Shown: one piece after another, positions 34,261 through 35,604 of the stretch
Layout of the letters: each line of letters opens with the position of its first letter
How positions within the stretch are numbered: the first letter of the stretch is position 1
NCBI RefSeq assembly: GCF_006345805.1
Contig: NC_043012.1
Location: 35,092,001-35,156,000, forward strand
Direction: 5' to 3'
DNA: 64,000 bases
From: Octopus sinensis
Taxonomy: Eukaryota
Made by a program: the position numbers and the translations under genes
The notes under the pieces: generated by a model
The model's database searches: none
What the model was told of the DNA's origin: nothing
The model's input: the letters and a program-made list of their open reading frames with translations, nothing else

Positions 34261-34364
34261 GTAAGACATTTATTATTATTATTGTTATTATTATTATTAT
34301 TATTATTATTATTATTATTATTATTATTATTATTATTATTATTATTGTTATTATTTTTTTTTCT

Positions 34365-34468
34365 TTCTTTCTTCAAATTTTCTTCCGTTTCTCGCCGAGT
34401 GTTTTCCGTACACCTAGGGCACAGAAGCTCATTGTATGCATTCCCAGATTACACATGCATAATTCACA
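34365..34468 (-). mobile_element. Short retroelement 3' tail embedded in (ATT)n
   Basis: Non-repetitive ~100-nt island (ccctaggtgtacggaaaacactcggcgagaaacgg on minus) between two ATT arrays, in the style of R4/Dong 3' UTRs. Confidence 0.45.
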
Positions 34469-34548
34469 ATTATTATTATTATTATGATTATTATTATTAT
34501 TATTATTATATTATTATTATTATTATTATTATTATTATTATTATTATT

Positions 34549-35533
34549 TGTTTGACTTTTGCTTTGTATTTGTACAAGTTGGCTCCAAGTCTCACCCAGA
34601 GACCTCAAGAGACAATAAGTTAGAAGTTCATGCTGGTGTTATGCCTAGGGTATCATATATTTGGTTTTACACATAGTATTGTTCTAAAGAATGGCAAATA
34701 CCCAAAAGAGAGGTAATAGTGCCGATGTTGACAAAGCCCTTACCCATCAATGGTTAGTGTGTTCTGGCTTAAAATCAGAAGCAGAAGGGTTTATCATAGC
34801 AGCTCAAGATCAATGCCTACCTACAAGGAACTACCAGGCCAACATATTAAAGAACGGCTGTAGCCCAACATGTAGTGCATGTCAACAACAAAATGAAACC
34901 AATGATCATGTTGTCTCTATGTGCAGTCTTCTTGCACCTAGATAGTATCTCAACAGGCATGATAGAGCCGCACAATATATTCACTGGGTAATTTGCAAAA
35001 ACCTGGACCTTCCCCATGATAAAAACTAACCACCCCCAGTGCTTGAAAATGATCACATCGCACTATCTGGAACTTTACCATTCAAACTGACAGAAAGATA
35101 GATGCGAATAGGCTAGACATTATATTGAAAGACTTCAAACAAAAGTCAGGCCTCCTCATTGACGACTGTCTCAATCGACATAAATGTATCTGTCAAGACC
35201 GACCCAAAACTGAGCAAGTATAAAGATCTTAAAATAGAAATTGTCAAATTTTGGAACCTCAAGACTAAAACAATACTTGTTGTCATAGGTGCCTTAGGAA
35301 TGATAACAAAAGGAGCTGATTGCTACCTAACTCAGATACCAGGAAACCCCAAAATGGCAGAAATTCAAGAGATATGTTTTTTTTTAGGAATTCACTAGTA
35401 CAACACTAAGTACAAAACCAAATATAAGGCATCCTAGGCATAACATCAACATGAACTTCTAACTTGTTGTCTCTTGAGGTCTTTGGGTGAGACTTGGAGC
35501 CAACTTGTACAAATGTAAAGCAAAAGTCAAACA
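34549..35533 (+). mobile_element. R4/Dong-clade (restriction-like endonuclease) LINE 3' fragment with inverted duplicate of its 3' end
   Basis: SEAEGFIIAAQDQCLPTRNY, CSACQQQNETNDHVVSMC (CCHC), RHDRAAQYIHWVIC, KLSKYKDLKIEI...VVIGALG. 34549-34684 is an inverted copy of ~35398-35533. Confidence 0.88.
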
Positions 35534-35604
35534 TGGAATAATAATAATAATAATAATAATAATAATAATAATAATAATATTAATAATAATTCATCTGTTT
35601 GTAG

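Follow-up and report, generated by a model that had tools for sequence, protein, structure and literature searches.

Complementary (ATT)n and (AAT)n arrays of retroelement origin beside the splice sites of a C2HC zinc-finger gene intron in Octopus sinensis

A 64,000-nucleotide (nt) stretch of the Octopus sinensis genome (NCBI RefSeq assembly GCF_006345805.1, contig NC_043012.1, positions 35,092,001 to 35,156,000 of the forward strand; hereafter the window, with coordinates counted from its first nucleotide) contains a small C2HC zinc-finger gene with an intron that carries (ATT)n microsatellites towards the donor, the complementary (AAT)n microsatellite beside the acceptor and a long inverted repeat between them. 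The explanation judged likely here is that an ancient phase-1 intron was filled by three 5'-truncated, (TAA)n-tailed fragments of long interspersed nuclear elements (LINEs), and that pairing between the repeats in the pre-mRNA is a by-product of their insertion, giving mild help at most.

Results

Anatomy of the intron

Joining 34074-34260 to 35605-35756 yields an intact open reading frame (ORF) of 112 amino acids with two zf-C2HC_2 fingers (Pfam, E = 2.5e-20). The coding part of the upstream exon (34074-34260, + strand), delimited by ORF, Pfam match and homologs, starts with an ATG at 34074 and encodes the first finger, while the downstream coding exon (35605-35756, +) encodes the second and ends in a stop codon at 35754-35756. 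Relatives returned by protein searches are labelled ZNF474/ZNF475 or 'C2HC/C3H-type domain-containing' and, judged from its sequence, the host is a small ZNF474/475-like C2HC zinc-finger gene split by one phase-1 intron. This GT..AG intron of 1344 nt (34261-35604, +) has the donor CAAA/GTAAGA (GT at 34261-34262; slash, exon boundary) and the acceptor TCATCTGTTTGTAG/G (AG at 35603-35604); both splice sites are inferred from the spliced ORF and a homolog in the bivalve Solemya velum.

Three microsatellites were delimited within the intron with Tandem Repeats Finder: an outer (TTA/ATT)n array at 34270-34355 (28.7 units, 95% matches), an inner (ATT)n array at 34469-34548 (27 units, 94% matches) and an (AAT)n array at 35537-35590 (18 units, 96% matches). 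The outer array begins 9 nt inside the intron, and 14 nt (35591-35604, +), comprising the residual pyrimidine tract and acceptor TCATCTGTTTGTAG, remain 3' of the (AAT)n. The inner array is contiguous with the left arm of an inverted repeat, the unique arms of which (34549-34692 and 35390-35533) span 144 nt at 88% identity (blastn, E = 5e-49), or 184 nt at 89% when the adjoining microsatellites are included (repeat finder). An initial annotation of this DNA, made from the letters alone, had described complementary microsatellites by both splice sites and an inverted repeat of about 135 bp; all of these elements are present within a few bases of where it put them, with the inverted repeat slightly longer than it had claimed.

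An assembly gap in the window (63749-63848) and the very repeat-rich character of the window would be compatible with a palindromic mis-assembly, or with a dead gene in which the intron is never spliced. The arms, however, are mismatched at 17 of 144 positions, whereas a chimeric palindrome would have nearly identical arms, and the 12% arm divergence thus argues against a palindromic assembly artefact. As both exons also keep the intact conserved two-finger ORF, with canonical GT..AG borders at an ancient intron site (see below), an artefact or a pseudogene is extremely improbable.

Retroelement identity of the intron filling

Between the arms, about 700 nt encode on the + strand the decayed C-terminal part of a protein of a non-LTR (long terminal repeat) retrotransposon. 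Homologs are 41-68% identical, the best named one (60%) coming from Octopus bimaculoides, and in tblastn the homology runs through two in-frame stops and two frame changes and includes a remnant of an endonuclease motif, ANRLD..LLID, at 35065-35163. A profile built from 22 homologs matches only R2 retrotransposon proteins in PDB (E = 0.0016-0.007), and the match, with scores that are weak but specific, spans a CCHC knuckle and the (R/K)PD...D...KYK endonuclease motifs; a Pfam search of the remnant gave only a weak match to zf-RVT. As the profile matches R2 proteins only, the element is taken to be a LINE with a restriction-like endonuclease.

The fragment with this coding remnant (TE3; body at 34693-35398, +, although the LINE homology may start at ~34684-34690) has its ORF stop at 35396-35398, followed by a 3' untranslated region (3'UTR) of 138 nt (35399-35536, +) and then by the (AAT)18 array, an order that identifies the array as the tail of TE3 and the right arm of the inverted repeat (35390-35533) as its 3'UTR. 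The left arm (TE2; 34549-34692, − strand) is a second, antisense copy of the same 3'UTR with the last three codons, and has its own tail, which reads (ATT)n on the + strand (34469-34548). The inverted repeat therefore results from TE2 and TE3 sharing a 3'UTR in opposite orientation. No array is found on the 5' side of TE3, the orientation of which is inverted relative to both TE2 and the more upstream TE1.

TE1 (113 nt, 34356-34468, −) probably derives, in antisense, from the 3' end of a further element with an (AAT)n tail. For the ~57 nt next to its tail, the highest-scoring non-self match within the window lies directly upstream of an (AAT)12 array at 61684; the score of 44-47 stands against a background of ≤36 and is reached by none of 500 shuffles. 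The repeat status of TE1 covers these tail-side ~57 nt, and the rest may be original intron. The outer (ATT)n array (34270-34355, −), whether tail or target array of TE1, is on this moderate evidence probably the tail of a third, antisense retroelement fragment.

By its tail and its endonuclease, the intron element resembles the Dong/R4-like LINEs. Dong/R4 elements (Xiong & Eickbush 1993; Kojima & Fujiwara 2004; as cited in PMC3812793) likewise possess a CCHC motif and a restriction-like endonuclease C-terminal to the reverse transcriptase, carry an (AAT)n, that is (TAA)n, 3' tail with (AAT)n on both sides of copies, and, according to the same source, have a known molluscan member in Biomphalaria. 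The intron copy differs in that it is without the reverse transcriptase, and it was likened to these elements by its features. TAA microsatellites are the target of Dong elements, in the snail Biomphalaria among others (PMC3812793). Most LINE clades that have a restriction-like endonuclease are target-specific (PMC4640811), and octopus genomes contain abundant, recently active Dong-R4 LINEs (PMC13282606, PMC8967140).

(AAT)n tails in related elements and across the window

An (AAT)n array ends all five of the related LINE 3' ends examined, two of them in the window (arrays starting at 35537 and 37774) and three at related LINE loci taken from two other assemblies (L001, L003 and L004). The second LINE fragment of the window (37423-37773) shares 52% amino acid identity with the intron copy; (AAT)19 forms its end and an (AAT/GAT)n array (37312-37422) lies in front of it. 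Arrays on both sides of the copy (whole unit, 37312-37831) are the signature of insertion into a TAA-type microsatellite. A short, unrelated element (family B) has copies at 36449-36595 (+) and 43145-43685 (−), each of them tailed; in the inverted copy the 3' end is at 43145-43310. The antisense copy, ~540 nt in length, has an (ATT)14 tail on one side and 154 nt of (ATT)n on the other (43686-43839), which places it inside an AAT-class microsatellite. An array on both sides of a copy is thus seen at 37312-37831, at 43103-43839 and in L003.

The window contains 11 AAT/ATT arrays (five ATT and six AAT on the + strand), of which at least five are demonstrably tails and two more (37312-37422 and 43686-43839) flank an insertion on its 5' side. 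The suggestion that AAT-targeting retroelements generated the intron repeats is strongly supported by the LINE interior, by arms that are the 3'UTR of the LINE itself and by the tails on related copies. At 43067-43144 an (AAT)12 array directly abuts the (ATT)14 tail, forming a perfect microsatellite palindrome in which tails meet.

Age of the intron

In the S. velum homolog (L002), the linker is likewise interrupted by a phase-1 intron, at a position that agrees to within one residue. The S. velum intron, of 2065 nt, has an ordinary pyrimidine tract and no ATT/AAT arrays. Exon-1 ORFs of many taxa end in ...SG/K, which is the reading of a conserved G/GTAAG donor. With site and phase common to a bivalve and the donor widely conserved, the comparison of sequences indicates that the intron is ancient and predates the insertions.

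In the S. velum intron, a ~630-nt element resembling a miniature inverted-repeat transposable element, with 44-nt terminal inverted repeats (2956-2999 and 3531-3574 of L002), lies 15 nt after the donor. A 28-nt direct duplication (2930-2957 and 3588-3615; 93%) includes the exon end and the donor GTAAGG, and so provides a second potential donor inside that intron.

A ZNF474-like paralog of 317 amino acids with at least three C2HC fingers is located 22 kb upstream of the 112-amino-acid gene on the same strand (11024-11977, +). It is a single ORF, intronless at the linker position that holds the intron in the smaller gene, and its best database relatives are just 38% identical over the full length. 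The intronless paralog prompted the idea that the intron was gained by retroelement insertion, which is ruled out by the site and phase shared with the bivalve and by the conserved donor. Protein searches with the 112-amino-acid gene, the LINE ORF and the 317-amino-acid paralog found nothing above 69% identity, and the closest named relatives were O. bimaculoides proteins at 60-67%. Exact look-ups with the paralog and with a frog homolog gave no match.

Predicted fold of the pre-mRNA

The minimum free energy predicted for the intron is -425 kcal/mol, compared to -266 +/- 9.8 kcal/mol for 25 dinucleotide shuffles (z = -16). Based on equilibrium pair probabilities, the (AAU)n array pairs with the outer (AUU)n over 51 of its 54 nt and with the inner array over only 1.5 nt, while the arms formed by the two 3'UTR copies pair over 129 of 144 nt, such that the predicted fold does join the complementary microsatellites and extend the duplex through the inverted repeat, as had been proposed; TE1 and the inner (AUU)n lie in an internal loop. 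The predicted A-U helix is worth ~49 kcal/mol and ends 9 nt from the donor and 14 nt from the acceptor, which would leave the splice sites ~25 nt apart. An in silico deletion of the outer array redirects (AAU)n to the inner (AUU)n with a loss of just 2.8 kcal/mol, so the two (AUU)n arrays are predicted to be redundant as partners. Graph distance between the splice sites was considered as a measure of bridging and set aside as uninformative, as constructs without the repeats still place the sites 42-63 steps apart, compared to 29 in the wild type.

A fold of this shape invites comparison with the (AC)m-(GT)n introns of fish and lamprey (Lin et al. 2016, PMC4691745), the precedent cited in the initial annotation, which does exist as bridged, U2AF2-independent introns in fish. 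In those introns, as here, complementary simple repeats lie within 40 nt of donor and acceptor, a hairpin is predicted across the intron, and the region of the branch point and pyrimidine tract falls within the repeat. The differences are that the O. sinensis units are A/U-only trinucleotides, ATT and AAT, rather than AC/GT dinucleotides, that the repeats are retroelement tails with an additional 144-bp retroelement stem inside them, and that a single locus is concerned, whereas the fish class is defined by co-enrichment of the repeats genome-wide across introns and not across exons, above the level predicted by independence, by a need for the repeats in correct pairing of the splice sites and by splicing independent of U2AF2 (PMC4691745). 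Intron stems in yeast (Goguel & Rosbash 1993; Libri et al. 1995; Charpentier & Rosbash 1996; as cited in PMC4691745) are similar in that intramolecular pairing shortens the distance from donor to branch point and loops out the interior; the yeast stems are short and leave the branch point free, whereas here a candidate branch motif lies inside the helix.

Evidence on the acceptor and on selection for pairing

By analogy with the fish introns, the (AUU)n-(AAU)n duplex and the inverted repeat could form a functional intron bridge that lowers dependence on U2AF2, a trinucleotide analogue of the fish system and possibly a class of introns in the octopus genome. The geometry fits the fish definition (repeats within 40 nt of both sites, PMC4691745), with distances here of 9 and 14 nt, and the extent and predicted energy of the (AAU)n pairing, the short pyrimidine tract and a host ORF kept intact with the load in place are all in keeping with a bridge. 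The acceptor region itself gives a divided picture. The claim that almost no polypyrimidine tract is left was overstated: the last 40 nt of the intron are indeed only 50% pyrimidine, versus 67.5% in S. velum, but pyrimidines make up 75% of the 12 nt preceding the AG (TCATCTGTTTGT), as they do in the S. velum intron, and this residual tract, predicted to be single-stranded (mean probability of being unpaired, 0.80), is still usable. Within the AG-free zone (35527-35602), a motif scan found one well-placed YTNAY motif, the TTAAT at 35580-35584, which arises from a single interruption of the (AAT)n and has its A 21 nt from the 3' splice site. This candidate branch motif falls inside the predicted helix (probability of being unpaired, 0.21), where its burial would hinder U2 binding.

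The small tests made on the intron give no sign of selection for pairing. Among the 17 mismatches over the 144 nt of the arms, seven keep a G.U pair and six give A.C, which matches the neutral expectation, with neither compensatory changes nor G.U pairs in excess; either (AUU)n array can stand in for the other as partner, and the bivalve homolog does without such repeats. The bridge further rests on a single locus at which the repeats are fully explained as retroelement tails, the ends come to within 42-63 graph steps of each other even in variants that lack the repeats, and a literature search found no report of AAT/ATT bridging. A bridge of this kind is unlikely; a role of the modelled duplex in splicing is possible but unproven, and a selected role in place of U2AF is likewise unproven.

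Pairs of inverted Alu elements or other short interspersed nuclear elements (SINEs) in introns form comparable long duplexes in pre-mRNA from two copies in opposite orientation, and RNA duplexes from long inverted repeats are textbook substrates of ADAR and Dicer. The O. sinensis pair differs in that both copies are in one intron, so that back-splicing of an exon is not expected, and in that the duplex is extended by complementary microsatellite tails. The intronic double-stranded RNA (a ~144-bp stem and a 54-bp A-U helix) could itself be functional, as a substrate for ADAR editing or small RNAs that regulates the host gene or silences the LINE family, and the paired stem (129 of 144 positions) and the low folding energy (z = -16) would suit such a role. 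Against this, no known RNA family was found in the intron with Rfam, the arm divergence looks neutral and any inverted pair of retroelements would show the same property without selection, making a function of the double-stranded RNA highly improbable.

Other features around the gene and in the window

A putative acceptor AG precedes the first coding exon at 34057-34058 (+). A 222-nt (TA)n array (within 33805-34058) stops 32 nt before it, and a self-complementary microsatellite therefore adjoins that putative splice site too. The Rfam scan, which covered 33500-38000, gave only sub-threshold miRNA-like matches; these fall on the (TA)n array and are artefacts of low complexity.

SINEs are abundant in octopuses (PMC8967140), and a SINE-like repeat of ~230 nt occurs at 36125-36340 and at least 10 other sites of the window with 78-83% identity (e.g., 48219-48452, 54066-54304, 55976-56208, 21778-22196 and 12155-12474, with a tandem pair at 21784-22145). 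Remnants of other mobile elements are located at 29821-32140 (+; weak RVT_1 and GIY-YIG matches, Penelope-like), 44518-44973 (+; a mariner-type transposase fragment) and 60590-61382 (−; an rve integrase fragment). Together, the SINE-like repeat and the Dong-like and Penelope-like pieces are suggestive of an octopod. The window also contains very long (AT)~540 and (TATC)~159 microsatellites (4-1057 and 56749-57379, respectively), and its assembly gap consists of 100 Ns.

Discussion

The anatomy of the intron can be accounted for by the way in which its elements would have been inserted. Dong/R4-like LINEs would integrate at (TAA)n/(TTA)n DNA through target-primed reverse transcription, with the result that every copy ends in an (AAT)n tail; the tails of the two fragments antisense to the gene then read (ATT)n and that of the single sense fragment reads (AAT)n. 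Apart from the elements and their tails, the intron consists of no more than 9 nt at the donor and 14 nt at the acceptor, which is why the repeats adjoin both splice sites. Once transcribed, tails and 3'UTR copies would zip the pre-mRNA into a long, two-tier hairpin. It is most likely that this duplex, as modelled, forms and excludes the retroelement load as a loop, making the 1.3-kb insertion tolerable, and it would be a by-product that at most helps mildly rather than a selected replacement for U2AF.

Several observations weigh against this account. Were TE1 to consist of retroelement throughout, the part of the intron free of retroelement-associated sequence would shrink to 23 nt, less than a functional ancestral intron needs; TE1 must then include some original intron, unless target DNA was deleted on insertion or the arrays lengthened by slippage. 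The insertions are old (12% arm divergence, decayed LINE ORF) and yet the host ORF has stayed intact, so that splicing of the loaded intron is presumably adequate, which would fit a duplex that helps. The pyrimidine tract at the acceptor is short and the last 40 nt are poor in pyrimidines relative to S. velum. Finally, the TE2/TE3 junction, head-to-head with tails outward, is unlike orientation-specific insertion into one microsatellite, for which TE1 and TE2 have the orientation expected of insertion into + strand (ATT)n and TE3 does not.

At that junction TE2 directly adjoins the truncated 5' end of TE3, no array separating the two, and a possible 9-nt microhomology (CTAAAGAAT) is located at 34684-34692. 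Opposite-orientation cDNA segments within one insertion, with possible microhomology where they join, also characterize the twin priming of L1 (Ostertag & Kazazian 2001, as described in PMC12016303), in which, by that description, priming of the inverted cDNA takes place at an internal site of one and the same RNA and leaves neither a tail nor a duplicated 3' end. In the octopus intron, each segment begins at an (AAT)n tail and the 3'UTR is common to the two, which needs two templates or two events, and classical twin priming of TE2 and TE3 is ruled out by their common start at the tail and the 144 nt of 3' end that they share. The options that remain would be a convergent double target-primed event with two RNAs, perhaps with deletion of target DNA, the retrotransposition of a chimeric read-through RNA, or two separate insertions followed by a deletion. 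TE2 and TE3 may represent the first of these, with both DNA ends primed on (UAA)n tails, a variant that was not found described in the literature.

Two candidate target-site duplications were considered. The first, ATAATTCA at 34459-34466 and 35587-35594, would imply an empty-site intron of 216 nt and was dropped as weak because five of its eight bases resemble the tails and its left copy could be part of TE1, while the second, ACA(T/A)TTATTATT at 34266 and 34464, is of equally low complexity. The candidates are too low in complexity to choose between the options for TE2 and TE3.

A broader reading would have Dong-like LINEs that home to (TAA)n seed complementary tails, with selection retaining the pairs that flank splice sites as a lineage-specific class of trinucleotide-bridged introns. 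RNA pairing could then compensate for lost pyrimidine tracts, in an invertebrate, retroelement-born parallel of the fish introns. Such a class is improbable.

The structure in this octopus intron is real and of retroelement origin, and a role for it in splicing is possible but unproven. If the duplex is a mere by-product, the locus is a clean example of microsatellite-homing LINEs creating and spreading (AAT)n arrays, and of an intron that absorbs a load ~60 times its residual 23 nt of original sequence with the gene left intact. If, instead, the pairing does aid splicing, structure-assisted pairing of splice sites would extend beyond vertebrates, and the mechanism would gain a concrete mutational origin in the tails of retroelements.

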